A DNA stretch of 64,000 bases, from assembly GCF_000143415.4 (NCBI RefSeq), contig NW_003314265.1, forward strand, positions 448,405 through 512,404. The letters are read 5' to 3'. The stretch comes from Selaginella moellendorffii (Eukaryota > Plantae > Lycopodiophyta). Below, piece by piece: positions 25,226-54,481 of the stretch (positions are counted from its first letter, which is position 1; every line of letters begins with the position of its first letter). The notes beneath the pieces were generated by a model, which did no database searches, was not told the DNA's origin, and saw nothing but the letters and a program-made list of their open reading frames with translations. The translations under genes and the position numbers were made by a program.

Positions 25226-28200
25226 CTAACTCGCGCTAATCAAAGCAGCTGCCAGCTGCTCTTCTAGGAATCTCACCCTCTCTACCTGAGTAAAGAATGC
25301 TGTGAATAACAAAACTAGCATACCAGTAATGTTGTTGCAGTGTTGGTTCGTCATAGCTTTAGTGCCGAATCTCCCGGAATTTCTTGTTGTCAAGACAGGC
25401 AAACTATTCACCTGTGAGCTCGAGATGAAATGCCGAATCTGGACGTCAGACTCACGTATGCGGTCCGTCAAAACCTCAATCTTCCCGTACATAAAATCAA
25501 TTGTTTCCTGGGACCTGGCGTTGGCACTTAAAAGCGCGGCGTTTTCCTGAAATTACGCAGTCAGTCGGCAATTGACAAGTAGCTCTCGAGGTTGTAGTTG
25601 TTTTTACTGACAGCGAAAAGGAGCTTGTTGACACTCTTGGTATTCATCAGCTGTGAAATACATTGCTCCAACACATGCTTCAACTGGATTTCCGTTTCCG
25701 TGAGTTCTGTTATTCTGCAAGGGGAAAAGTATGTAAGTCTGCGAAAGGCAATGGAAAACAGTTTTCACCTTGAATAATATGCGTCAGAAAACTTTCTCCT
25801 GTCGAGATTACACTGCAAACAATAAAGTTATACATCAGTTGCAATTATATATCCTACACTGACATCTACCGCAAAACAAAGGCTATAACAATCACGACCC
25901 ACCTGATGCCTGCTACAAGTAGAACCTCGTCCTTCTCAGCCTATATTCTTGATAGAAATTCTCCTTACTACACTAGTACTACCCCCCAGACAACACATAT
26001 TGTAACGAGCGGGTTAGCTTCCCTCTAGCTATCCTCACAGCCCAATCAGATCCACAAGCTTTATGAACGACCACCATAGCAGATCATAAACCATTTCGAA
26101 GCAGGAGATGCTTCTCACCTGTTGGTCAATCTCATCCATTCTCTCAACTTCGTCTGTATATCTTCCCTTTGGTTCGAGTTGCTGTCGCGCACTACACTCA
26201 CTTTCCTTCTCTAAAGTCAGACACTCGAGCCCGTTAGTTTGCTTATCACTGACGCCCAGCATGGCCGTCCACATAAAGTCTTTTGCTTCCTGCATCACCT
26301 AGTTAGAAGTCTCTCCAGGAAAACAATGTCAAGTTTCTTACTTGGATGGCAGACAAGACTAAAGATCGGCAGTCTTTAAAAACGTCCTCCAGAATCCCTG
26401 CATGTGCTATACCCACGACCGCCTCCTTCTCCAAGTGTGCGACGTGTTTCTCCAGCTCTTGCCGAAAGAGCACTTCTTGCAATAAATCCTCCTGAAAAAC
26501 AAAAATTAAGAAATTCTAAAACCATGCGCCAGCGACTACCTCTAAGCACTTCTTTTCTACCATTGAAGAGTAAAGCTCTGTCCTCATTCGTGTCAGCTCC
26601 TCGTCCTGTTTAAAACAATAATCACAAGCCCTTCAATTCTAATTGTTACCTTGGAAACGAGGGATTGCTGCAGCACGTCATATTGTGTCTGTAAATCAGA
26701 TGATTCAAACTCATCCTACATAAACAGATGAATCAGCCACAAAACTGAAACTGAGTAAGAAATAAACTTACAGCCAAATTCTTTACGGCAATATCAGTAG
26801 CAGAAGACATTGAGTCCGTATTGTCACTTCTCAAGTAGCCTTTATTCATACTTATCCACGTCTCCTCGTCAGCAACATTTTCGAAATCTGACGGAATTGA
26901 AACCACCTCCGCTTGTGTTTCCTCTAGAGGAGTATCGTTGAAGTTGCTGTCGTCGTCAAAGAGCATTTCAAAGGCCACTGGAGTAAGATCTGTATCCTTC
27001 CTAGCGGAAACCATTGGAGATTCCAAGTTTACAGAATCCTGTATCAAGGTCAATGGTGAAACCCATGGTAAAGGCAGCATGTACCTTTAGAGAGTTTGGA
27101 GTGACCAAGCGTGGACACCATGTTTCACGCCGATTGCTCTGAACATGTAATCGTAAGGAGAAAACCCAAATAGCGAAAATGGCAGTACCTTTCTTGATGG
27201 TTTGCGATCATCCCACGTAGAACTAATCACTAGAGTGCTCAGGTTTTCAATCTTTCGCTCCTGTTCTTGAATCCTTATCTCGCGGTCTTTTTGAGCTTTT
27301 TTCTCTTCCTCAAGCTCCAGAGCCAGTCTTTCACGTTCTAGCTCGAACTGGCCACAAGATCATCGGTAAGTTATATTCCATTGTCAATGACAAAGACACT
27401 AACCTTTAACAGATCATTCCTCAAGTTCAATATTTCCTTCTCCAAAACTTCAGATCTCGTACCCTGAATCCACTAAGTTAGGCAGAGATTAACGTGTTCG
27501 TATGATATCCAAACCTGCAGTTTCATTCGTAATACTTCGATTTCTTTCTTTTGCCGTTTCAGCAAGGCTGCATCTGTGATTGTCTATCGCATAGTAGCTA
27601 TGTCAGAGCAAGTTTCCTGGTCGGGCAAACAGTACCTCATTAATTTGTGCACATGTTGAAACCCGTTTAGCTCTGCTGGCAAACAGCAAAGTTCCTCGTG
27701 TCTCATCAAGCTGCATCTGTGAATTAACTTGTGTCAATTATCAAGGACATGCAGAACCATCCGCAACGTTACCTCATCCGGAGTAATTGTGCAGATGACG
27801 GCAGTTTTAGCATTTCCATCCAAAGCAGACTGCAGAATCCGAGTTAACTNNNNNNNNNNNNNNNNNNNNNNNNNNNNNNNNNNNNNNNNNNNNNNNNNNN
27901 NNNNNNNNNNNNNNNNNNNNNNNNNNNNNNNNNNNNNNNNNNNNNNNNNNNNNNNNNNNNNNNNNNNNNNNNNNNNNNNNNNNNNNNNNNNNNNNNNNNN
28001 NNNNNNNNNNNNNNNNNNNNNNNNNNNNNNNNNNNNNNNNNNNNNNNNNNNNNNNNNNNNNNNNNNNNNNNNNNNNNNNNNNNNNNNNNNNNNNNNNNNN
28101 NNNNNNNNNNNNNNNNNNNNNNNNNNNNNNNNNNNNNNNNNNNNNNNNNNNNNNNNNNNNNNNNNNNNNNNNNNNNNNNNNNNNNNNNNNNNNNNNNNNN

Positions 28201-29152
28201 NNNNNNNNNNNNNNNNNNNNNNNNNNNNNNNNNNNNNNNNNNNNNNNNNNNNNNNNNNNNNNNNNNNNNNNNNNNNNNNNNNNNNNNNNNNNNNNNNNNN
28301 NNNNNNNNNNNGGTAAGCTGAAAGTTAACAAACAATAATTTCTAGGCATTTCAATCTGACGCTTACCTTCTCCAAATTTGAGGAACTCAAAGACCTGATC
28401 TGGACTGCTCACAATCTCTTCGCGTAATCCTGCCACAAAAATCCCCCTCTGAAGCTCTTTTCAGTAAAGTCCAAAACACAAACAGGATCAATCAAAATAC
28501 ATACGACGGAGTTTTCATGTATCCGAAGCTTCCGATTTTCAGGAGCAAGCAAGTCGTTGATTTCTTCCTTGTATATTTCCATGTATGAAACCCGAATCAA
28601 GAACTCCCTGTCTAGTATCTGCAAAGAAGCAAATAAGCTCCACAGAGAACAGATTTAATTACACAAACACTCTGAATGGTGCTGAAAACGTCGCATATAG
28701 CACGATGGATAAGCCCAGGATCCCGCTCAGACCCACGCATTGTATAGGTTTTGCCACTGCTGGTTTGGCCATAAGCAAAAATTGTTCCTGGAGCAACAAA
28801 AATAAGGAAAAGGGAAAAAAAAAACAATGAGAGCCAAACAACTCTGAAAAACGAAAGAGACCATTGAATCCTTGAAGCCCAGATAGAACGAGATCCTTGG
28901 CATGGATCTCATACACGCTTGCATTGGTCGCATCCTTGGTAAATATTTGATCTATCGAAACGGAGAACACGATCAATCACAATCAATGCCCTACTTACCA
29001 AACATGTAGGATTGACCCAGCACAGGTGCGCCGAGCGCATTGTACAGTGCGATCGTTCTAGCCCCAAGCTTCCATTGGCTGCCTCTCACAAGCTCCTGCC
29101 TGATCGGCGGCCTCACCCGGATCGCGACCGAAATCTTCTCGCCCTGCTGCAT
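25226..29152 (-). CDS. Kinesin-7 (CENP-E-like) motor protein, many exons, interrupted by an assembly gap
   Basis: [61 protein letters not shown], then coiled-coil exons. 3' end approximate. Confidence 0.9.
27850..28311. other. Assembly gap (N run) inside the kinesin motor domain
   Basis: Run of N. Confidence 1.
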
Positions 29153-30184: not shown

Positions 30185-30308
30185 GCCGACCTAGCTCAGC
30201 TGNNNNNNNNNNNNNNNNNNNNNNNNNNNNNNNNNNNNNNNNNNNNNNNNNNNNNNNNNNNNNNNNNNNNNNNNNNNNNNNNNNNNNNNNNNNNNNNNNN
30301 NNACGGCG
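30185..30308 (+). tRNA. Probable tRNA gene(s), Lys-like 5' end, interrupted by a 100-N gap
   Basis: GCCGACCTAGCTCAGCTG (tRNA 5' end with A box) precedes the gap at 30203-30302, and ACGGCG (tRNA 3'-end-like) follows it. Confidence 0.55.
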
Positions 30309-30375
30309 ATGCATTGTTTGTGTTTAAAGTCTTTTAATCATCTCCATGTTTGCGGCTTCGAAAGTTTCTTGAGCT

Positions 30376-31872
30376 ATGGGGATCTTCCGGAAGAAGATGG
30401 GAAAGCCCCTCAGCGAGGAGGGGCGGATAAAACGCGCAGCAATTCGGCTCCGCAGGATCTACAGACTGTATGGAAACCCAGAGGCCGAGGTGGAGGCACT
30501 GACGACCAGGCTCTTGGAGGCTGACAACTTGCTCGAGGTGCGGACGACTTACGAGATCATCTGCACGCAAACTCACACCCGAGACAACCGCGAGCTCAAG
30601 AACGTGACGATCCAGGCATTTGGAAAGTGGGGTGGCGTGGAGGAAGCCCGCCAAGTGTTTGACGCCATTCGCCACCCAAGGAACGAGGCATACCGGGCGA
30701 TCTTTGAGGCCTACGTGAACAACGGGCATTTGGAGGATGCCCGGCGGGTCTTCTCATCTCTCCCTCGAGCAAAGTCGTCGTGGTGGATCCAGATGATGGC
30801 GGCGTACGCCCGCTACGGCAAGGTGGCGGAGGCGAGCGAGATCTACAACTGGATGCCGCACAAAAAGGCCCTCGGGTGGAGCTTGCTGCTCATTGCGTAC
30901 GCGAGAAACGGCCTGGTTGACGAGGCCAGCGAGATGCTCCAGAGCGTCCCAGCCTCGGATTCCATTGCCGCAAATGCGGTTCTAGCAGCATTCGCTCGGG
31001 CAGGGAATGTGGTGGCAGCGAAGGAGCTGTTCGATTCCATGCCCGCCAGGACTTCCGGGAGCTGGAACTCGCTCGCGCAGGCATATGCCCAGGCAGGGCA
31101 TCTTGCCGAGTGCGTCAAGGCCGCCAACTTGATGCCGGAGACGACGCGGGGGACGTGGGTGGCCATGATCAGGGCGTACGGAGACCACGGCATGGTGGCG
31201 GAGGCCCGTACAGCCTTCGACAATTTGCCCCGGGTGACTGTCGACGCATGCAACACCCTGATCGTGGCGTATGCCCGTAACGGGCATCTGGTTGAGGCAA
31301 AGGAGCTGTTCGACGCGATGCTGGTGAGGAGCACCGTCACCTGGGCGTCCATCATGGAGGCGTGCACCATGAACAATCTCGCGGGGCAAGCGCTGGAGAT
31401 TTTCCACTGGGAGAATTGCTCGGGGCAGCTGATGCCGGATCAGGTGGTCCTCTCGGCGGTTCTTAGCGCGCATTCTTGGCTCGGGTGCCTAGACGATGCG
31501 GCGGGGATCATCCGCGACATGGCCTCGGACTACGGCATCCGGCCGAGAGTGGAGCACTACTGCGCGATCCTGGCAATGCTGACGAGCCGATCAGAGCTGG
31601 GAGATGCCGAGGATCTTGCAGCAAGCATGCCGTTCGTGGCCCCGGCCTCGGCGTGGAAGCTGCTCCTGGACGTGTGTAAGATCCGTCGGGACAGCGCCCG
31701 GGCAAGGCGAGTGGCGGAGGAGATAGTCAGGCTGGATCCCAGCGGTCGCGCAGAGCCATTCATGGTAGTAGCCGGCCTCTACTTCCGCGAGGGCCGGCCG
31801 CAAGAGGCCGTGGATCTCATGCTGGAGAAGGGGCTGGCCGGTCAAGATGTTGACCTTTTGACCCGTGGCTAG
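30376..31872 (+). CDS. Divergent PLS-class PPR protein with E-like domain
   Basis: 498-aa ORF with AYARNG repeats, EHYCAILAML and AWKLLLDVC. Confidence 0.9.
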   Translation: MGIFRKKMGKPLSEEGRIKRAAIRLRRIYRLYGNPEAEVEALTTRLLEADNLLEVRTTYEIICTQTHTRDNRELKNVTIQAFGKWGGVEEARQVFDAIRHPRNEAYRAIFEAYVNNGHLEDARRVFSSLPRAKSSWWIQMMAAYARYGKVAEASEIYNWMPHKKALGWSLLLIAYARNGLVDEASEMLQSVPASDSIAANAVLAAFARAGNVVAAKELFDSMPARTSGSWNSLAQAYAQAGHLAECVKAANLMPETTRGTWVAMIRAYGDHGMVAEARTAFDNLPRVTVDACNTLIVAYARNGHLVEAKELFDAMLVRSTVTWASIMEACTMNNLAGQALEIFHWENCSGQLMPDQVVLSAVLSAHSWLGCLDDAAGIIRDMASDYGIRPRVEHYCAILAMLTSRSELGDAEDLAASMPFVAPASAWKLLLDVCKIRRDSARARRVAEEIVRLDPSGRAEPFMVVAGLYFREGRPQEAVDLMLEKGLAGQDVDLLTRG

Positions 31873-31877
31873 TCTTT

Positions 31878-32076
31878 GACCGAAGGATATCCTCCCAAGC
31901 GTGGAATGACTATATTTACTCTATTAAGCACTGGCCGTCCCAAACTGGAGGAGTGAACGTTGTAATTGTCCTATGGATAAAGAAGCCTGCCATCTTCCCA
32001 AAGTGGAGGAGTGGACGTCATAATTTGTGGAAGTTGAGGGCTCGCGTATGCTCCGAATTGTAAGCCCTATAAGATG
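31878..32076 (+). pseudogene. U1 snRNA relic: two 3'-half fragments plus flank remnants
   Basis: 31985-32048 nearly matches the SL3/Sm/SL4 part of the U1 gene at 36945-37007. A shorter second copy lies at 31932-31967. Flanks gaccgaaggatat and aagcccta are shared with the intact gene. Confidence 0.85.
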
Positions 32077-32619
32077 TATCTTCCAGTAGACCCCAAGTTG
32101 TGACAATGCCCTCTTGTGAGACGTCAATGCAAAAACAAGCTTAATAAAGCATCCAATTTTAAAAAACTTCTTAAAAACAAGGAAAATAATTTATGACAAA
32201 ACAACCATTTTAATTTTGACCTTTTCTAATGGTTCTAAATGCAAATTGAAAAATCATTTCTAATAATTAACACAAAGATTCATTTATAAACCAATGTAAA
32301 ATCCCATAAACCAATATGAATATGGTATAAAACAATGTATCAACAAGTTGAGGCATAAAAATCAACTCAAAAGAATCCAAAAGGTTGTCCCCTCAAAAGT
32401 TGATCCTTTCCTTGTAAATGAGAAACTAAACATGCAATAAAACCACCCCATTTTTGTCCTTCCAAAACACAAATAGTTTTAATTGCTTAAAAACCAAGAG
32501 TGACCATGTATGAACAACGTTCCAAACCAACATCAGGATGTTAGTTTAAAATGCTGGTTTATCCAAACCACTTCCACGGCCAAAAAACCAACCTTTTGGA
32601 GGTGATGTGAGATACAAAA

Positions 32620-32740
32620 TCAATTGTATCTCTAGCAACTCTGGCAAATCAGGACACCTTGGTCCAGCATAAATCAAACTGGCGATGGCCCCCTTGAGCT
32701 TCGGAGGACATTCCCTGCAAAGAGGAGATAAGAGATTAAA
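32620..32740 (-). pseudogene. Captured fragment of the IST1-like gene (intron acceptor plus exon)
   Basis: Encodes ECPPKLKGAIASLIYAGPRCPDLPELLEIQ, near-identical to ~46030-46145 including the intronic ctttgcag. Confidence 0.9.
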
Positions 32741-32741
32741 C

Positions 32742-33121
32742 CTGCTGCTTCTCTCGTTTCTTCTGCTTATGAAGCACGAGCACTGCATCATCATAAATTC
32801 TTGCAGGATTCCATGGTCCAACTCTCGCAGACTTACAATCTCGAGATCCCGGTGGTGACAACAGTGCTCAAAGGAAAGAGCTCACCTATACTCCCAGCAG
32901 TGATCAAACGGAGGAGCTCGCCTATCCACCCAGGACCAAAACACGTTAGTGCATTCGAAAATGGATCTCCTCCAAGCATTGGCACCAAACAAGCTGTGAA
33001 ATCTGGAACTCCTTCAAATGGAAAGATCGTTCCGGGCCCTCCTCCAACTCGTAACACATTTGCAGGCTGGCTGCATTCAAGGCCACAGATTCATTGCGTC
33101 AATAAAACGAAAACATGTTAA
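32742..33121 (+). pseudogene. 5'-truncated copy 1 of the secreted peptide-precursor-like gene
   Basis: Homologous to 34949-35434 but lacks the signal peptide and one internal repeat. Confidence 0.85.
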
Positions 33122-33529
33122 ACGGCACTAAACACTAAACTCTGATTCTTTGTTAGAGAAAAACAGTTTATTTATTGGGTCACTTACTGAATCAGTGACG
33201 ATGGCCGGCCTGCAAATGGAGGGAGAAGTGGAAGAAAGAGCCCGAAGTTACCATACCTCTAGATCCTGTGATCATGCAAGAAACACAAAAAGTGGACGCC
33301 CCTTGGCATGCTTTGTATCCTTCTTGTAAAATAGTTTCTTGATCACAAGACTATAGAACTTAGGAAAGAGAGAAAACCACTTTCTTGTCTTTCAATCTAT
33401 TTCTTTAAGAGCCACGCAAACAAACTTTTGTTCGGTTGCTTCAATCCAGTTTTACAATTATCCTGCTCATAGATTTTTCTTCTCTAGTTCCTTGTTTCAA
33501 TCTTGTTTTTTCCTAAAAAATCAACACTG

Positions 33530-34410
33530 TATAACTAGAAAGATTTCCTTACAGATCAAACTACCTCCAGTTCCAGATTTCTGCACACTATTTTGCTCTG
33601 TAAGGGAAAGACCAAGGACACGAGAGAAAAGAAAGCATACCAAAGGACCTCCACTTCTTGCGTTTCTTGCAAGATTGCAGGATCTACAGGCATGGTAATT
33701 TCAGGCTCTTCCGGTTCTTCCACTTCTCCCTCGAGGGCATCCAAGAGCTTCTTCCTCTCGGCCTCTTGCGCCGCCTTGACCGTGGCATCCTGCTCGGCCT
33801 TGAGCTTCTTCATCTCTAGCTCCCGCTGTTTTCGCTCAAACCATGTATCGGCATCGGCCCAAACTGCAAAGATAGAATTCCAAATCAACAAGGTAAGACG
33901 AAGCTGTCGTGGAACAAATAGCAAAGAAAAATCAAAGAGACAAGAAGAAAAGTAATAGTTTAGAGAAAGAACTGACAAACAAGTGAACCAAAGGCAAGAG
34001 AAGTAAAACAACTGGCTTCGTTTAGGAATGAAGAACTAAAAGAAAAATCTTCAGCAAATCCATATACTCTATGAAGATGAAATCTAACGCAAAAAAAAAA
34101 AAAAAACGAGAAAGAAGGGAAATGGAAGAGAAAACTCACTTGGTTGAGATGCCCAGCCCTGTTCTCTTCCCTTGATCTTCATGGGCTGCGCGTAATTCAC
34201 CGTCAACAGTTTGCGAAAGAGCTCCGAGTTGTGCATGTTGTCCATGGCCGCCGCCGCATCGTCCCTTGATCCAGGGGCATTGTCACGTCCTTGATGTCGC
34301 CAAACGGATTCAAACCCCGTGGAGAACCCCCTCGTTCACATTCTCGTTGTCCAAAAATCTCGGAAGAAACAATGTGATCAATAACAGATTCTCCATGAAA
34401 CTTTAGGGTT
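33530..34410 (-). pseudogene. Pseudogene copy of the RRM gene at 48823
   Basis: [36 protein letters not shown]; RNP1 deleted with frameshift; intron retained. Confidence 0.9.
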
Positions 34411-34479
34411 CCAATGAATGCGACCACAAATGGCCAGAGCACTGCACGGGAGCCTAATGACGTGGAACACCATGCTGAC

Positions 34480-34636
34480 GACATATGCCTAGACTGCATA
34501 CGGCCATACGAGCCGGATCTTTTGGGCAGCATCGGGGAAAGAAGTAGCGAGAGTTGGACTTGACTTACACGGGCTGGAAACTTCCTCCGTTTTGCTCTAC
34601 AACTTCCATACGTCGCCTTGTTACTTTCGTTCGTAG
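34480..34636 (+). pseudogene. 3'-end remnant of the PPR gene at 54482-56797
   Basis: Encodes WAASGKEVARVGLDLHGLETSSVLLYNFHTSPCYFRS*. Confidence 0.85.
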
Positions 34637-34948
34637 GCGAGGATTCAAAGTTCAGGAATGTTTTTGTTTCACCGGGAGGGAACGAGACTCTCGTTCAAAC
34701 GAAAGAGCGTGTTTTTGACGGATGATTTTTCAAAGTTTTTCCGGGACGGATGGAGAGGAATAACCGTGTATAAAAGCCATTAATGAAGCTGGGGGAGAAG
34801 AAGCGATCCCATTGGAACGGGAAGAGCAAAAGTTGCGATCCCATTGGAACTGGAAGTCTAGCAAAAGTTGGAGAGAGAAAGCGATCCCATTTGAGCAGGA
34901 AGAAGAGTTGGAGGAGATCAAAGCCAAAGCACTCGGAAGTGTCGGAGC

Positions 34949-35434
34949 ATGGAGACTCGTCTGATCTTCCAGCTGCTGCTGCTGCTGCTGCTCCTGGCTG
35001 GAGAGATCCACCAGGAACAAGTTGGAGCTTCCGCTGCTTCTCTCGTTTCTTCTGCTGATGAAGCAGGAGCACGGCATCATCGTAAACTCTTGCAGGATTT
35101 CACGGTCCAGCTCTCGCAGGCTTACAATCTCGAGATCCCGGTAGCGACAACAGTGCTCAAAGGAAAGAGCTCGCCTATACACCCAGCAGTGAATAAAGAA
35201 AGTATACTCCCAGCAGTGATCAAACGGAGGAGCTCGCCTATCCACCCAGGACCAAAACACGTTAGTGCATTCGAAAATGGATCTCCTCCAAGCATTGACA
35301 CCAAACAAGCTGTGAGATCTGGAACTCCTTCAAATGGAAAGATCGTTCCAGGCCCTCCTCCAACTCGTAACACAATTGCAGGCCGGCTGGATTCAGTGCC
35401 ATCATCGCCGATTCACTGCACAAAACCATGTTAA
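34949..35434 (+). CDS. Putative secreted peptide precursor (copy 2), 161 aa
   Basis: Signal peptide METRLIFQL8AG, RKLL, repeated SSPIHP units, C-terminal RLDSVPSSPIHCTKPC; TATAAAA at 34769. Confidence 0.7.
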   Translation: METRLIFQLLLLLLLLAGEIHQEQVGASAASLVSSADEAGARHHRKLLQDFTVQLSQAYNLEIPVATTVLKGKSSPIHPAVNKESILPAVIKRRSSPIHPGPKHVSAFENGSPPSIDTKQAVRSGTPSNGKIVPGPPPTRNTIAGRLDSVPSSPIHCTKPC

Positions 35435-36455
35435 ACGCATGATCAACCAAATAAATAAACTCTGATTCTACTAAGAAAGAGAAAAAAACAGTTTCAGAAT
35501 CAAGAAACTATTTTTTTATGTAACGAACAAATTAGATGGTCACTTGTGGCGCTGCTCAATCAGCTACAATGGCCACCCTGAAAATGTGTTATGAGTTGGA
35601 GGGAGAAGTGGAATTCTAACCGGAAGAAACCGAAGTTACCATGCCTGTAGATACAGTGATCATGCAAGAAACACAAGAAATGGATCTTTTCTCTCGTGTC
35701 CTTGCTTCTTATAAAATAGGTTCTTGATCACAAGAAGGAAAGATTTCAATTGATTTCTTTAAGAGTCATTTGCTTCAATTCAGTTTTATAAATTCGCTCC
35801 ACTATCCCGCTCATAGAGTTTTGTTCTCTAGTTCCTTGTTTCAATCTTCAAGCTTTTTCCTCAATAACCGGGAATCACTGGCTTTGGAATTCCGTTCGAT
35901 CGAAGAAACCTCCTTGATAACCTTCTTGACTGGTGAATCTTCAGGGTTTGTGCGAGGACTTTAGACGTGCCTAGAACTATACCGTGTGTATAAAATAACT
36001 CTCAAGGAAGAGCTCATCCCCGCAAAGGTTGGAAGAAAAGATGGTTCTAAAGCAAAGCAAAGGTAATGGCTCTTGATTGACTGAAGCTGCCGCTGCTGCT
36101 CTTGTTCACAACAACACACAGCGCTGCTTCTCTAAGATCTGATAGATCAGAATTTGCTTTTTCTCTTCCATACAAACTTTCACATTGTCTGTTTTCCACA
36201 AATTTCTGCTGTTCTCCAGCAACAGTGGAGCTAGTCAACCTATACATCCACAACTGCCGTATTATATACATATTGCGTGGCACTCGGTCTATTACCAACA
36301 AAACAAATTACAAAGTTTTTCTTGGTAAATGAAGTTTAGGTACTAATATTCTGTTGGTGAAAAAATTCATTGATGTTGGTGCCAAAATTGAGCTAGGGTT
36401 TCGTAAAGGACCACGCCACTTTCATATGTTTGAATAAAAATTATTTTACAAATAT

Positions 36456-36512
36456 TGGCGGTATGGTACTCTTTTAACTTCTGGCCGTGGGTTCGAACCG
36501 CGGGGTGCTCAG
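36456..36512 (+). pseudogene. Degenerate tRNA-Lys(UUU)-like or SINE-like relic
   Basis: CTTTTAAC anticodon-loop-like sequence, then TGGCCGTGGGTTCGAACC (B box); weak A box TGGCGGTATGG; stems do not pair. Confidence 0.4.
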
Positions 36513-36790
36513 ATACGGCATCCGGCCGAGCCAATTAGATCATATTATAAGAGTTATGACGATCGAGGGCCCACGCAGGGCATTCGACCACTCTTGGGCA
36601 AGATACTTGCAGCAACAGTATCAATTGTTGTAAAGGTCACATCTAAGTTCTTGCTACTCCTTGGAGAGCTTTGCTCCCAAAATACAAAAGAGAAGATGAG
36701 AGAAGGCTTCTCTTTTTCTCACCCGACAACTCCTCCTCCCTCGTCTCGATGAGCCATGACCGAAGGATATGCTGCACCAATTCTTGCCCT

Positions 36791-36837
36791 ATCCCACATG
36801 CCGAGGCGTGGAATAAGGGCACAAGAGCAGTATATAA
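36791..36837 (+). promoter_or_regulatory. Plant snRNA promoter: USE plus TATA
   Basis: ATCCCACATG at -70 (consensus RTCCCACATCG) and TATATAA at -30 relative to the U1 start. Confidence 0.9.
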
Positions 36838-36860
36838 GATAGGGCCTGGGGAAGAGATCC

Positions 36861-37020
36861 ATACTTACCTGGACGGGGTCTATTGGTGATCATGAAGGCC
36901 AATGGCCTAGGTTCGGCCTTCCCATTGCACTACGGCTTGGCCGGCCTACCATCTTCCCAAAGTGGAGGAGTGGACGTCGTAATTTGTGGAAGTTGAGGGC
37001 TCGCGTACGCGCGGCCCTCT
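36861..37020 (+). ncRNA. U1: U1 spliceosomal snRNA
   Basis: Starts ATACTTACCTGG; loop I GATCATGAAG; loop II ATTGCAC; Sm site AATTTGTG; terminal GAGGGC..GCCCTC hairpin; about 160 nt. Confidence 0.97.
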
Positions 37021-37466
37021 CCAAATTCTAAGCCCTAAGATGGATGATTCTTTCATCTCTTGTCTTCTCGAATTATTGCTCTCCTTAGAAAAATCATCCA
37101 TCAGCTGTCAAGAACACTCCCCCCTGCGATGGCGGCTCGCTCCTCTCGAATCCTCTGCGGATCGTCGGCATGCCACCGTTGAGCAGGCTGTGTCCAATCG
37201 GCTCGGGCTGCCTCGTTTGGCTGCTGCATCAACATCCCCGCCACAGGCGGTGCATACGATCCAGAAGGTTTCGATCCAAATTCTCGCTGGGATACCATGG
37301 AAGAGAATTTCTTGTTACCTCGTTTCAGTGAAGCCTTGCTCTTGCTGGAGAGCGGTGCTAATCTCCATAGCCTGTGTGTGTGTGTGAAGAGAATTGTCCT
37401 CGCGCTTGGTTGTAGCCGCACAATCGATTGAGAAAAATGGCAATGCTTACATGCTCGCGATGTGTA

Positions 37467-37523: not shown

Positions 37524-38165
37524 TGGAAGCCGTCTCGTAAACAGCCTCCCAATCCTTCTTGGTTTTAAAGGGCTGCTCGCGAGAGCGCCCGACTTTTTGC
37601 AAGGGAACTGGGTCTCCTTTATATACTGATCAAACTGCAGATTTTTACTCTCCGGCATGTGGGATAGGTTGAAGTGGGTTAGAATATTCGTTTGTCCCTT
37701 CAATTATCCACCTTTTGTCTTCTCGTATACATCACATTGTATCGATTGAATAAGCCTTCCTTTACGCAACCTTTATTTCCTCCATTTTAATCTTTGCATT
37801 TGTGATGGTTTAGGAGGCCCGCTCAAGGGAGTTCTGCAAAGTAAGCAGCGTCAACCCAAGGCCAGCCTATAAACCCTCCAAAAATAGCTCACGCACGGAG
37901 GCGTGGCAACGGGCATTGACCCATTGCTTTGTTTTCCTTACTCATTAGTTTAAGGCAAGGTTTCAAATTCTTCCTCGCCAGCTTATATACGCTGCTAAAT
38001 ACCCGATTCCAATCCCCGGCGAGTGGGATATCTTTGCCCTCGCAGCATATGCTCGAATCTAGCCTATCGTGAGCTTGGAATATTTACCGGCATATACTTT
38101 AAAACTTTGGTGTGGCGCTTTTATGTACACACGAGGCCCAGCCATGGCTGAGAGCTTCTTTGCGA

Positions 38166-45594: not shown

Positions 45595-48166
45595 ATGTTC
45601 GGTGGGAGCGGCAGCTCCAAGGCGACGAAATGGTGAGTGTTCTTCTTTCTCGTCTTGGGATTTCATGACAATTTCCTCCATGGCTGCGCCGCAGCAAGAC
45701 GCAATTGCGACTGGTGGTGTCGCGGATCAAGATTCTACGCAACAAACGCGAAATCCAAGTCAAGCATTTGCGGCGGGATGTGGCCCAGCTCCTCCAGAAC
45801 AAGCAGGATGGAAATGCACGCACTCGGGTATGGAGACTTTGGGATTTTTTCCTCTTTCGTTTTGGCCTTAAGATCTCTCACAGGTTGAGCACGCGATTCG
45901 TGAACAAAACATGGTCGATGCCTACTCGCTCATCGAAGGATACTGTGAGTTTCTAGCGTCAAGAATCCAGAGTATCAGTGGAAAGAAGTAAGACCCCACA
46001 ATTATTGGTTTCCTTTTGCGCGTTTAACACTATCTTATCCCTTTGCAGGGAATGTCCTCCGGAGCTCAAGGAGGCCATCGCCAGTTTGATTTATGCTGGA
46101 CCGAGGTGTGCGGATTTGCCGGAGTTGCTGGAGATACGGTCGATTTTCAGCGCCAAGTATGGGAAGCAGTTTATCGCTACTATAGTGGAGCTTCGTGTTG
46201 GTTGTGGAGTTGGCAAGAAGGTGAGATTTTTTTTTTCTTCAGGGAGAGTATCCAGTAACTGGTTTCACTTTTTGTTTGTACGTGTAGATTGTGGAGAAGC
46301 TATCAACACAACCTCTCACTGCAGCCATGAAGCTAAACTTCATGGCTGAAGTTGCGAAGGAGCACAACGTGAATTGGCAGCCCGCGGACTTGTCTCTTCC
46401 TGCCGAGGCACCTGATACACCTCCGAAACAACAACAAAAGCCTACGGTAAGCACGCTTTTCTTCTTCTGTTTCAATGCCTATGCCTATAATCTGCTCAAA
46501 TGTGGTGTCACATCAGCAACCGCAGCAAACCAACAGTAGCAGCTCTCCAACGTCGCCGCTTGACAAAAGACCTGTTATTCCTGCCGCTCAACCGGCCGTT
46601 CAGCCGGCCCGTGCTCAACAAGAGTCCAAGTCCGATTCTGACGACGATGAACCTGTTTCAAAGCCTTCGGCATCTCGTCCCGTTCAAAAACCCGGCCATC
46701 AGCAACAGTTCATTCCGTTCGTTCCACCAACTCCAACGGCAACAGTGAGTAGCGTTCCAGATCCTTACGCACAGTACACAAAAGGGATTGTCAATCCTTA
46801 CGCTCACAAAGCTGCACCGCCCCCACCACCTCCACCTCCACCGCCACCGCCACCACCACAGCAAATGACTGATGATCCTTACAGCGAGTACAGGAAGCAG
46901 TTCAGTGGGAATCATGCCTACGCAGACGTTGCAACTGCCGCGGAAGCCGCTGCTCAGTCTGCTGATCATGCTGCTGCGGCTGCTCGAGCTGCTGCAACTC
47001 TTGCTCACAAGCATCTCTCGCGGGAGACTTCAATGACTTCAGAAGCGGATCAGGGAAAAGCTCGGGTCAGGGAACTCGACTTGGTGGCGAATCTGGAGGA
47101 TAGAGTAGCATCCTACATCAGAGCCCACGCAAACGATACGGACTCGTCGGAATGGGAAACTCCGACTCCACTGGCAAAGCAGCAATCCTCGCCAATATTG
47201 AACCCAAGCAGGAACTTGCAGAGAGAAGCGGAGCTAGCTGAAAGACATGGTTCAATCAGAAAGTCGCATACCACTGATGGGATTAACATGGAAGAACATC
47301 AAAGATGGAGGCATACTGCAGGCGATGAAAATGACCTCAGTCCAGTGAAGCAGAAGGCGGGTAGTCCTCTTGGAATGCGAACTGACCATTTCGACAACAG
47401 CTTGTTTAGAAGTGAGCCCGCCGAGAAGAGAGAGGAGGCGGGGAGTCCTCTTGGAAAGCCAGTGTTTGATCACTTTGGCGGTACAGAGGAGAATCGGAGC
47501 TCCAGCGTGATGTCTACACCAGGATCTTCTTATGACCATCGGCCAGTATATGATCATTCGAGGCCAACAAGATACGACGAAGAGCCCGAGCAAACTTTCA
47601 ACAGAAGAGCAGAAACATTAGCAACTCGACCTTTTTATGATCATCAGCGCGATGAGATCAAGCTCAAGCCAGTTTATGATGAAGCTCCAGCGGTGGTTTC
47701 CAGACTGGATTCGTTCACTTTAAACATGGAGACGATGCACGGGAGCGTCCTGTCCAGGACCGAGAAGCTGTTTGAGAAAGAAGACTCGGATCACTCGTCT
47801 CCAGCGCCGAGATCGAGCCGGCGAGCCCAATCAAACTTCCGGAGAAGCTTTGACGTTGATGATTCGGGAGACGAAGAAGAGTCAAGCACCAGCTTTGAGA
47901 GTGAAGCCAAATCGGCAGCATCGTCCATTCCCGCGGCTCCATCTCAAGAACAACAGCCACCATCGTCGCCATGGCGATCGCGACCTCCTCCAACTCGCCC
48001 GCCTCCAACGCTCCATCTCCAGCAAACCGAGAATCTCGATCCCAGTGGCAAGCACCTGGATGTCCAGAAGCAATTCCACGGCCACAGCGAGCAGTCATTG
48101 CCGCCACCGCCATCGATGAGGACGCACAGGCTCGGTGGAGCAAGCGTTAGAACGCGACGCAAGTAA
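45595..48166 (+). CDS. IST1-like (regulator of Vps4, ESCRT-III) protein
   Basis: KCKTQLRLVVSRIKILRNKR, ARTR/VEHAIREQN, ECPPELKEAIASLIYA, AAEAAAQSA motif, long Pro/Ser-rich tail ending SVRTRRK. Confidence 0.92.
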
Positions 48167-51554: not shown

Positions 51555-52290
51555 CTACGAACGAAAGTAACAAGGCGACGTATGGAAGTTGTAGAGCAAA
51601 ACGGAGGAAGTTTCCAGCCCATGTAAGTCAAGTCCAACTCTCGCTACTTCTTTCCCCGATGCTGCCCAAACGAAACTCGTCCACAGTAGCGTGTCCGGCT
51701 CGTATGGCATGTGTAGAATGAGATCCATGGCGAGAGATGGCGGATCGCTACTCATACCATACGGCTCGTATGGCATGTGTAGAATGAGATCCATGGCGAG
51801 AGATGGCGGATCGCTACTCATACCATCCGGCTCGTATGGCATGTGTAGTCGTGGATCTGGCCACACTGCCCCATGGCGTTGACCATGCAGCTGTAGTGCT
51901 CCCGTGGCGGTCAGACCAAAGTCAAATGCCATTGACCTCCACCTGGCGCTGCCGGGGCTCCCCGTTGACTTATGGCGACCAGGGTGGCGGTCATCGTGAT
52001 GCAGTTGGGTGGCACTATGAGGAGCATCTCGTGAAACAGGGAGAGCGCCTCTTGGGCCATTCGGTGGTTAGTAAGCGCCAAGCATTGCGTTCCTCCATGT
52101 TGTCAAACAGATTCTTCGCCTGCTAGCACTGTGAATATGCAGAGAGCATCGTGTTCCAGGACGTGAGGTCCTTGTGTGGCATTGTATGAAACAAGAATTG
52201 AGCGTTTTCAAGATGCCCAATTTTGGGCATATGCCGCGAGCACTCACAACGTTGTAGCGGTTAAACAGGAACTGACTCTCCATTCATGGA
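51555..52290 (-). pseudogene. Deleted and frameshifted 3' copy of the PPR gene at 54482, with an internal 66-bp tandem duplication
   Basis: Near-identity to 54482-55110; the LHMPYEP..AMDLI unit is repeated. Confidence 0.9.
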
Positions 52291-52583
52291 CACAAGCAAA
52301 GAAACCAGAGAAATCAAGAGAAATCAACCTCTGCACCATAACACATTACAGGACACCCGGCGCGCTCACATCCAGCACCCATCACTTCTCTCCTCCAATC
52401 CTCTCTCTCCAACCAAGAACACTCGCTCGCGTCAACCTTCGGTTAGGGTTCGACTAAACTGGACACAAGCTTGCAAGGCATATGTCGTTAGAATGGTACT
52501 AGGCTCCCGGGGCAGTGTCGAAGCAGTCCAGCCGCACTCTGGCCATTTGTGGACATTCATTCGAACCCTAAAGTTTCTTGGAG

Positions 52584-53389
52584 AATGGCGGCGCCGAATC
52601 CAAAGACGGCGCCGGTGCTAGCGTGTGTTTGATCGCATTGTTTCTTCCGAGAATGTGAACGAGGGGATTCTCCACGGGTTTCATTCCGTACATCAAGGAC
52701 AATGCCCCTGAATCAAGGGACGATGGGGCGGTGGCCATGGACAACATGCACAACTCGGAGCTCTTTCGCTAAGTGTTGACGGTGAATTACCCGCAGCCCA
52801 TGAAGATCAAGGGAAGAGAACAGGGCTAGGCATCTCAACCAAGTGAGTTTTCTCTTCCATTTCCCTTCTTCCTCGTTTTTTTTTGCGTTAGAGTATATGG
52901 ATTTGCTGAAGATTTCTTTTCTTTTTCTTCTTGTTCTTAATTCTTCATTCCTATACGAAGTCAATTGTTTTCTCTTTAATACTTCTCTTGCCTTTGGTTC
53001 ACTAGATACTTTGTTTGTCAGTTCTTTCTCTAAACTATTACTTTTCTTCTTGTCTCTTTGATTTTTCATTGCTATTTGTTTCACGACAGCTTCGTCTTAC
53101 CTTGTTGATTTGGAATTCTATCTTTGCAGTTTTGGCCGATGCCGATACATGGTTTGAGCGACAGCAGCGGGAGCTAGAGATGAAGAAGCTCAAGGCCGAG
53201 CAGGATGCCACGGTCAAGGCGGTGCAAGAGGCCGAGAGGAAGAAGCTCTTGGATGCCCTCGAGGGAGAAGTGGAAGAACCGGAAGAGCCTGTCCTTGGTC
53301 TTTCCCTTACAGAGCAAAATAGTGTGCAGAAATCTGGAACTGGAGGTAGTTTGATCTGTAAGGAAATCTTTCTAGTTATACAGTGTTGA
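52584..53389 (+). pseudogene. Second pseudogene copy of the RRM gene
   Basis: MAAPNPKT start, RNP1 deletion, in-frame stop (ttc gct aag region shifted), [13 protein letters not shown] exon retained. Confidence 0.9.
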
Positions 53390-53511: not shown

Positions 53512-54003
53512 TTAACATTGTTTGACGCAGTTAATCGGCGACGATGGCGCTGAATCCAGCCGGCCTCCAAATGTGTTACGAGTTGGAGGAGGGCCTGGAA
53601 CGATCTTTCCATTTGAAGGAGTTCCAGATCTCATAGCTTGTTTGGTGTTAATGCTTGGAGGAGATCCATTTTCGAATTCACTAGCGTGTTTTGGTCCTGG
53701 GTGGATAGGCGAGCTCCTCCGTTTGATCACTGCTGGGATTATAGGCGAGCTACTTTCTTTATTCACTGCTGGGTGTATAGGCGAGCTCTTTCCTTTGACC
53801 ACTGTTGTCACTACCGGGATCTCAAGAGCCTGCGAGAGCTGGACTGTGAAATCCTGCAAGAGTTTACGATGATGCCGTGCTCCTGCTTCATCAGCAGAAG
53901 AAACGAGAGAAGCAGCGGAAGCTCCAACGTGTTCCTGGTGGATCTCTCCAGCCAGGAGCAGCAGCAGCAGCAGCAGCAGCTGGAAGATCAGACGAGTTTC
54001 CAT
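53512..54003 (-). CDS. Putative secreted peptide precursor (copy 4), 163 aa
   Basis: METRLIFQL9AG, three SSPI repeats, RLDSAPSSPINCVKQC. Confidence 0.7.
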   Translation of the reverse strand: METRLIFQLLLLLLLLLAGEIHQEHVGASAASLVSSADEAGARHHRKLLQDFTVQLSQALEIPVVTTVVKGKSSPIHPAVNKESSSPIIPAVIKRRSSPIHPGPKHASEFENGSPPSINTKQAMRSGTPSNGKIVPGPPPTRNTFGGRLDSAPSSPINCVKQC

Positions 54004-54481
54004 GCTCCGACACTTCCGAGTGCTGTTGCTTTGATCTCCTCCAACGTTTGTTCTTCCTGTTCAAACGGGATCGCTTGCTCTCTCCAACTTTGCTAGACTT
54101 TTGGTTCCAATGGGATCGCAACTGTTGCTCTTCCGATTCCAATGGGATCCCTTTCTCTCACTTGGAGATACCCCAGCTTCATTAATGGCTTTTATACACG
54201 CTTACTCCTCTCCATCCGTCCCGGAAAATCTTTGATGACGTGCCGCATGCTTGCCCGTGCCGCGTGCTGCTGCCCGGCTGACGGGCGCCCGTCCGTCGTC
54301 CGTCATCCAGAACTGGGGGAACGGGAGTTCTTACCGCGGGGTACAAACTAGACCCTTGGATATGTTTCGTGTGCGCTCGTGGCGCGGTTAATTGAAGGGA
54401 GTGTCCGTCAAAACGCTGCTTCGTTCGAACGCGTTCCTTCCCCGTGCAACAAAAACAATTTCCTGGACTTTGAATCCTCGC

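Follow-up and report, generated by a model that had tools for sequence, protein, structure and literature searches.

At one locus in the genome of Selaginella moellendorffii, several short, intronless open reading frames (ORFs) resemble one another, and the question they raise has two parts: are these genes maintained for a protein product and, if so, what kind of protein do they encode? An initial annotation of the 64,000 nucleotides analysed here (hereafter "the window," on scaffold GL377569.1 of assembly GCA_000143415.2) answered both, proposing a lineage-specific family of secreted precursors that would release signalling peptides, by analogy with CLE, CEP, IDA and PIP. Among vascular plants, lycophytes are sister to all the others and, to our knowledge, their peptide signalling is known almost only via orthologues of angiosperm families.

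The inventory of copies agrees with that annotation. Three intact intronless ORFs (161, 161 and 163 aa) and a fourth, 5'-truncated copy at 32.7 kb lie in the window, the extra copies having been found by tblastn and by blastn of the window against itself, and the neighbouring duplicates of an RRM and a PPR gene are decayed, as had been claimed (frameshifted or partial in tblastn):

34949–35434, plus strand: copy 2, intact intronless CDS, 161 aa plus stop; exact protein called on GL377569.1
50733–51218, minus strand: copy 3, intact CDS, 161 aa, 95% identical to copy 2
53512–54003, minus strand: copy 4, intact CDS, 163 aa, 88% identical to copy 2, with three full repeat units
32744–33121, plus strand: copy 1, homologous from codon 29 on (equivalent of codons 29–161), without one repeat unit
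34129–34371, minus strand: partial RRM-gene remnant between copies 1 and 2 (tblastn, residues 72–172 only)
52576–53029, plus strand: frameshifted RRM remnant between copies 3 and 4 (tblastn pieces in three frames)
51558–52224, minus strand: frameshifted PPR 3'-end fragment upstream of copy 3 (tblastn pieces in frames -1, -2 and -3)
34520–34633, plus strand: PPR remnant of 38 aa upstream of copy 2

Copy 1 has an in-frame stop immediately 5' of the homology, no ATG and no promoter homology; because of that stop and the missing ATG, we regard it as 5'-truncated. The second haplotype scaffold, GL377574.1, carries four further intact ORFs of 161–165 aa (SELMODRAFT_408887, 408868, 408872 and 408874, all annotated "hypothetical protein"), which brings the diploid assembly to seven intact and at least two truncated ORFs, all at a single locus (and its allele). 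Self-comparison of the window places the copies in a locally duplicated, partly inverted unit that also includes the 3' end of the PPR gene and the RRM gene, and the family has spread by segmental duplication together with these RRM and PPR pieces. A transposon-borne or captured ORF was considered and rejected, as the protein searches returned no relatives outside the family and all copies sit at this locus or its allele.

At the family locus, the two haplotype scaffolds are structurally different. The block at 30348–37387 of the window (PPR498, copy 1, RRM remnant, copy 2) is 96% identical to a block on GL377574.1 that lies ~60 kb from the positional allele, and 86% identical to the positional allele itself. 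Runs of N (27850–28311 and 30203–30302) adjoin this block, and the haplotype difference may for that reason be a scaffolding artefact. Between copy 2 and the PPR gene lie a full-length U1 snRNA (36861–37021, plus strand, 138 bits) and, beside it, a likewise full-length U12 minor-spliceosome snRNA (37807–37958, minus strand, 99 bits). The U1-containing stretch (36757–37387) lies at the junction where the duplicated 7-kb block gives way to homology with the positional allele, and the other scaffold has a further U1-like copy (L005:2933–3204, GL377574.1) upstream of the block, which raises the possibility that U1 copies mark breakpoints of duplication or recombination. Elsewhere in the window, a 563-aa ORF (46475–48166, plus strand) has no Pfam match at E ≤ 0.001 and sits inside a 751-aa gene annotated on the opposite strand.

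Around the full-length copies, the flanks carry gene signals, among them the upstream TATAAAA whose conservation had been pointed out:

34769–34775, plus strand: TATAAAA, 180 nt upstream of the copy 2 ATG; identical in 7/7 full-length copies (flank alignment)
34803–34870, plus strand: 32-nt tandem repeat in the leader or promoter (TRF), two copies plus a degenerate third at about 34880; conserved in 7/7 full-length copies
35450–35459, plus strand: AATAAATAAA, a poly(A)-signal-like element (AATAAA) 16 nt 3' of the stop; conserved in 7/7 full-length copies

Each 32-nt unit contains GCGATCCCATTGGAAC with ATTGG (a CCAAT box reversed) and lies downstream of the TATA box but upstream of the ATG, as do its counterparts in copies 3 and 4; a role in the leader or promoter is putative.

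How the copies have changed indicates that they are coding genes under selection. The sense frame is the only frame open in 7/7 full-length copies. Variable columns make up 8.4% of the CDS vs. 14–18% of the flanks (p = 0.002), and the CDS has undergone four indel events (3, 3, 6 and 9 nt), all multiples of 3, as against 12 events in 320 bp of flank, 3 of them multiples of 3 (i.e., CDS indels are 4–5 times rarer than those of the flanks; Poisson p about 7e-5). Frame-keeping indels had been noted from the outset, and copies 1 and 2 likewise differ by 27, 6 and 9 nt, all in frame (read from the protein alignment). CTG slippage accounts for two of the four CDS indels and, since every indel of the truncated copy 1 keeps the frame too, frame keeping is partly a by-product of the 3n-period repeat structure.

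Substitutions divide the gene into two parts. Whole-gene dN/dS is about 1 pairwise and 0.75–0.77 by maximum likelihood, neither value being significantly different from 1. Codons 1–61 (signal peptide and pro-helix with RKLL) have an omega of 0.18–0.19 (p = 5e-4 to 1e-3), whereas codons 62–166 (the disordered Pro/Ser tail with its repeats and motifs) have an omega of about 1.8 (p = 0.15 vs. 1); synonymous and nonsynonymous changes stand at 11:4 in the N-terminal part vs. 4:27 in the tail (Fisher p about 1e-4). This two-part contrast was first noticed in the data; it is stable for every boundary codon from 50 to 75 and for separately inferred trees, and the 61|62 boundary matches the helix end modelled by AlphaFold2, an independent criterion. 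The tail, its omega being not significantly above 1, may be simply unconstrained apart from its frame. Gene conversion among the copies is evident, in that trees of the two gene parts differ, and it blurs the rate estimates. The initial annotation had named dN/dS near 1 combined with frameshifts as the pattern that would speak against these genes: the first half of that pattern is present at whole-gene scale, but the second is absent, CDS indels being in frame throughout, and the N-terminal part is strongly constrained. As a methodological caution, whole-gene dN/dS near 1 masked the strong constraint under which one third of the gene evolves.

Two antisense ORFs (192 aa, 34730–35308; 152 aa, 53638–54096) were rejected, being not open in all copies and with substitutions that fit the sense frame. 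A noncoding RNA reading was also rejected: Rfam gives U1 and U12 only in the region, both elsewhere.

Transcription is barely shown by the reads; at most it is low and confined to particular copies or conditions. When the deep, raw stranded RNA-seq runs X21 and X22 were mapped to 32600–35900 (about 12% of each run read), X21 gave no read on the copy 2 CDS and X22 gave about one read pair (35153–35374) in sense orientation (plus-strand RNA), as judged from cross-mapped RRM and PPR reads on the same stretch. Run X1 (library type guessed as RNA) covers only genic parts of the mapped stretch and is, on that ground, probably RNA; it holds copy 4 contigs at depth 11–17, and the differences and loose end of a 229-nt contig at depth 11 match copy 4 (54003–53512) when compared by hand. 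Fourteen runs of the X1 kind, drawn from six studies, are comparable in their share of the words, and an exact 845-nt copy 2 contig is present in runs X15–X20 (library type DNA or RNA). Assembled public runs yielded no full-length or partial ORF of the family by exact-protein look-up and protein search, the look-ups returning the NCBI assembly only.

Three side observations concern the same reads. Those at 33488–34375 are 95–99% alike with the same differences throughout, and come from an expressed RRM paralogue elsewhere and not from the remnant. The 229-nt contig of X1 begins at 34930, and the transcription start might therefore lie downstream of the ATTGG boxes. Runs X3 and X7, which bear two other organism labels, hold 18–25% of the exact 31-mers of the copy 2 stretch and may be S. 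moellendorffii or a very close relative.

Near-zero RNA coverage in two runs is what might be seen if the copies were young orphan ORFs (proto-genes) with little or no function, kept intact by recent duplication and homogenising gene conversion. Whole-gene dN/dS (0.75–1.0, not different from 1), the lack of homologues in protein searches and the open frame retained even by the truncated copy 1 point the same way. We nonetheless think such an origin improbable: it leaves unexplained an omega of 0.18 (p = 5e-4) over the N-terminal 61 codons, CDS indels depleted and in frame next to indel-rich flanks, the decay of the RRM and PPR pieces of the very same duplicated unit, and the conservation of TATA and poly(A) signals. 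Gene conversion, moreover, cannot generate the synonymous/nonsynonymous contrast, and for this reason we take the genes to be translated and functional in the sense frame.

If these are genes, do their products belong to a described family? Against Pfam (including RALF, PSK, EPF, extensin and PMEI), two proteins matched no family at E ≤ 10 and the third gave one chance match (E = 0.16). A word-indexed search of 5.8 billion proteins, queried with the full protein, its last 81 aa and the pro-region, returned S. moellendorffii proteins only, an exhaustive profile search (HMMER, 1.84 billion cluster representatives) returned the family's own cluster only, and an ESM Atlas feature search gave noise-level matches only (0.81–0.82). 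In the searchable literature, no paper on these loci, proteins or motifs was found. Judged by sequence comparison, the family is so far known only from S. moellendorffii among the protein databases searched, and its members are annotated only as hypothetical proteins. The claim of a lineage-specific multi-copy family outside described families thus holds, the Pfam, word-indexed and HMMER searches being empty beyond the species; a match to a transposon or known family, which the initial annotation had listed as counter-evidence, appeared in neither Pfam nor the protein searches. The family is new, but the kind to which it belongs, that of small, secreted, peptide-precursor-like proteins, is known: a Leu-rich helix at residues 2–20 (predicted), 161–165 aa, no domain, an N-terminal omega of 0.18 and in-frame indels all accord with a generic secreted small protein or peptide precursor, which has a signal peptide, fewer than 250 aa, no further domain and a selected coding frame.

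The layout of the protein, given here for copy 2, is as follows:

34949–35131, plus strand: residues 1–61, predicted signal peptide (about 1–18 or 1–27) and helical pro-region (38–59); purifying selection
35081–35092, plus strand: RKLL (R45–L48), a candidate subtilase/S1P-type basic processing site, putatively cleaved
35159–35260, plus strand: repeat zone K71–H104, SSPIHP-type 12-aa units bounded by K/KRR; 39-nt direct repeats
35336–35371, plus strand: GKIVPGPPPTRN (G130–N141), a GPxPxxN-type 12-mer; best window vs. MpCLE2 and CLE41, within shuffles (p about 0.1)
35384–35431, plus strand: C-terminal RLDSVPSSPIHCTKPC (R146–C161), SSPIH with codons unlike those of the repeats; two terminal Cys

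All of the motifs originally listed are found in the copies and their alignments. The predicted signal peptide is Leu-rich, with M-E-T-R leading into a hydrophobic core of 12 residues and then A-G, and is followed by an Ala/acidic stretch and RKLL; in AlphaFold2 (single sequence) residues 2–20 form a helix, residues 38–59 form a second (pLDDT about 80), and the chain from residue 60 to the end is low-confidence coil, i.e., a disordered tail. RKLL is present in the three intact window copies, whereas copy 1 has HKFL at this place and one allele has RNLL; the RKLL tetrapeptide is a named basic processing motif of the Arabidopsis AtPME17 pro-protein (PMC7694680). The 12-aa repeats bounded by basic residues are real at the DNA level (39-nt units, 85% identical); copies 2 and 3 each contain two and a half units and copy 4 contains three. 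Across copies the repeat core is SSPI(H/I/L)P, bounded by K or KRR. Downstream, KIVPGPPPTRN is followed by a C-terminal end that reads RLDS(V/A/G)PSSPI(H/N)CxKxC, preceded by the annotated G. The C-terminal SSPIH is encoded by TCA TCG CCG ATT CAC vs. AGC TCG CCT ATA/ATC CAC in the repeats, and its recurrence by chance has a frequency of 2e-4 (2/10,000 tail shuffles); at the level of sequence, recurrence with different codons argues in favour of some peptide-level function.

The composition of the tail invites a different explanation, in which the protein stays unprocessed as a small hydroxyproline-rich, glycosylated protein of the wall or apoplast (extensin/AGP/PRP-like) and its repeats serve glycosylation or cross-linking. 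Hydroxyproline-rich glycoproteins (HRGPs) have P+A+S+T of at least 50% or SP3–5 repeats, and often a GPI signal. A disordered Pro/Ser-rich tail with SPP and SSP motifs and an N-G-S sequon, tolerant of residue replacement while length and frame are kept, would suit a protein of this sort. We rate it as quite unlikely, in view of a tail with only 41% P+A+S+T (12.7% Pro, 13.4% Ser), no SPPP or other SP3–5 run, no Tyr cross-link motifs, and neither a hydrophobic C-terminus nor a GPI signal; the repeats are, in addition, few and have basic boundaries, and Pfam gave no extensin or AGP match.

The signalling-hormone proposal of the initial annotation requires closer comparison. Carried through, it would make the proteins precursors of post-translationally modified signalling peptides of the CLE/IDA/PIP/CEP kind, with RSSPIHPGPKH, GKIVPGPPPTRN and RLDSxPSSPIH as 12-aa products that would bind subfamily XI of the LRR receptor kinases. 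In the CLE, IDA, PIP, RGF and CEP families, whose modified peptides bind such receptors, the mature peptide is a conserved island of the precursor. The architectural likeness to these families is genuine: a small pre-pro-protein with an N-terminal signal peptide (predicted here), a variable region and Pro-rich 12-mers with basic boundaries near the C-terminus, as well as several peptide modules, as in some of their precursors. There are also partial skeleton matches, namely R..P..P.P.H in RSSPIHPGPKH (R1, P4, P7, P9 and H11 of the CLE skeleton), GP.P..N in GKIVPGPPPTRN (G6, P7, P9 and N12), and an SGPS-like core, which in two alleles (RLDSGPSSPIH) is SGPS itself, said to be typical of PIP peptides. 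The recurrence of SSPIH beyond chance can be counted on the same side, as can MpIDA1, which is EVPPQGPSPIHN (PMC8462819).

We scored every window of the putative mature part against CLV3, MpCLE2, CLE41, MpCLE1, IDA, MpIDA1, PIPL3 and RGF1 (Table 1 of PMC8462819) and compared the scores with those of composition-preserving shuffles. The best-scoring windows were RSSPIHPGPKHV and GKIVPGPPPTRN, with scores reached by 6–48% of shuffles (p 0.06–0.5), i.e., likeness to the hormones was no better than composition alone provides. CLE peptides have a 12–13-aa domain with R/H1, P4, G6, P7, P9 and H11-N/H12 (PMC8462819), a pattern absent here: RSSPIHPGPKHV is without G6 and N12, GKIVPGPPPTRN has its VP shifted and is without H11, and CLE scores were reached by 6–24% of shuffles. 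Peptides of the IDA type (PIPPSAPSKRHN, a 12-mer with central Pro and C-terminal His-Asn; PMC8462819) find no HN in the candidate peptides, the best windows lying within 35–48% of shuffles. For PIP/PIPL and CEP there is no GxGH, SGPS occurs in those two alleles only, and PIPL3 lies within 16–27% of shuffles. RGF/GLV/CLEL peptides follow DYxxxxxKPPIHN, with a DY sulfation motif and a PPIHN-like C-terminal end (PMC8462819), and no copy contains DY (best RGF1 window, p about 0.06). More generally, a C-terminal H-N/H-H or GxGH is required by these ligand classes (PMC8462819), and no motif here ends in this way. Pfam and window scoring agree with the earlier statement that no canonical CLE, CEP, IDA or PIP motif is matched.

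Selection separates the family from these hormones still further. Unlike in CLE, IDA, PIP, RGF and CEP precursors, the motif-bearing region is here the fastest-evolving one (omega about 1.8 vs. 0.18), at or above the neutral rate while the signal peptide and pro-region are conserved; allele 408868 has replacements within RKLL, SSPIHP and GPPPTRN; and no orthologue was found among the other plant proteomes searched. The hormone function that had been proposed by analogy is thus not supported, and we give it a poor chance. Because the putative peptide part evolves fastest, a defence-type or species-specific role fits better than that of a conserved hormone, and a fast-evolving extracellular role is the more likely one. 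CTNIP/SCREW phytocytokines have a conserved C-terminal peptide with two Cys in a disulfide; two C-terminal Cys (CxKxC) are present in the Selaginella family, a possible likeness.

The reading that we prefer, and to which we assign about even chances as a whole, is that these are real protein-coding genes of a young S. moellendorffii family of secreted pre-pro-proteins, with a conserved N-terminal part, a fast-changing tail and a role of the defence or interaction type. The family grew by local duplication of a ~2.8-kb unit (PPR 3' end, family gene, RRM gene), each gene encoding a pre-pro-protein of about 161–165 aa whose Leu-rich signal peptide would, judging by its sequence, direct it into the secretory pathway through the ER. 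The conserved amphipathic pro-helix ends near RKLL, where a subtilase-type cut may follow, as in plant pectin methylesterase pro-proteins. What remains would be an intrinsically disordered, Pro/Ser-rich tail of ~113 aa with 3–4 SSPIH cores, K/KRR boundaries, an N-G-S sequon and a C-terminal CxxxC, probably proline-hydroxylated or glycosylated, and either cut at K/KRR into SSPIH peptides of ~12 aa or acting whole in the apoplast. Release of several peptides at the basic sites is plausible from their placement. Selection would keep the secretion/pro part and the frame while letting, or driving, amino-acid change in the tail, and it is this two-regime signature that leads us to favour a defence, interaction or phytocytokine-like role over that of a conserved developmental hormone. 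A narrower proposal, possible though doubtful, is that of a lycophyte-specific class of multi-peptide precursors yielding hydroxyproline-modified SSPIH peptides through RKLL and KRR cleavage, which would evolve fast and have a phytocytokine, antimicrobial or interaction role and a receptor or target of their own.

Other secreted precursors show parts of this combination. HypSys pre-pro-proteins of the Solanaceae are secreted, of about 150–165 aa, lineage-restricted, and contain several Pro/Ser-rich, hydroxylated and glycosylated defence-signal peptides. The Selaginella family is similar in precursor size, Pro/Ser-rich content and lineage restriction, a likeness of description in which processing and modification are, on our side, putative; we know of no sequence similarity between the two. 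Legume NCR peptides and animal cathelicidins are lineage-specific, occur in tandem clusters, and join a conserved signal/pro part to a hypervariable mature part; they share with the Selaginella family purifying selection on the secretion/pro part and rapid replacement in the released part (putative here), whereas the tail here is disordered and Pro/Ser-rich, with two Cys only and no Cys-knot or amphipathic antimicrobial fold. Plant group-II pectin methylesterases (RKLL/RRLL-processed) have the identical RKLL tetrapeptide after a helical pro-region (PMC7694680), but the short motif alone is in common, as no PME/PMEI domain is present here and cleavage is presumed.

If not expressed or not secreted, the genes would amount to yet another cluster of young orphans in a dynamic region rich in PPR genes. 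The evolutionary signature of the family is clear and testable, and its SSPIH cores are short candidate products amenable to synthesis and assay. If the proposed class of SSPIH precursors is real, the precursor layout of modified peptides would have been invented independently outside seed plants. An orphan secreted family whose secretion and pro-region are conserved while its Pro/Ser-rich tail changes rapidly would in itself be a lineage-specific invention of apoplastic peptides or proteins, one that may be tied to defence or biotic interaction.
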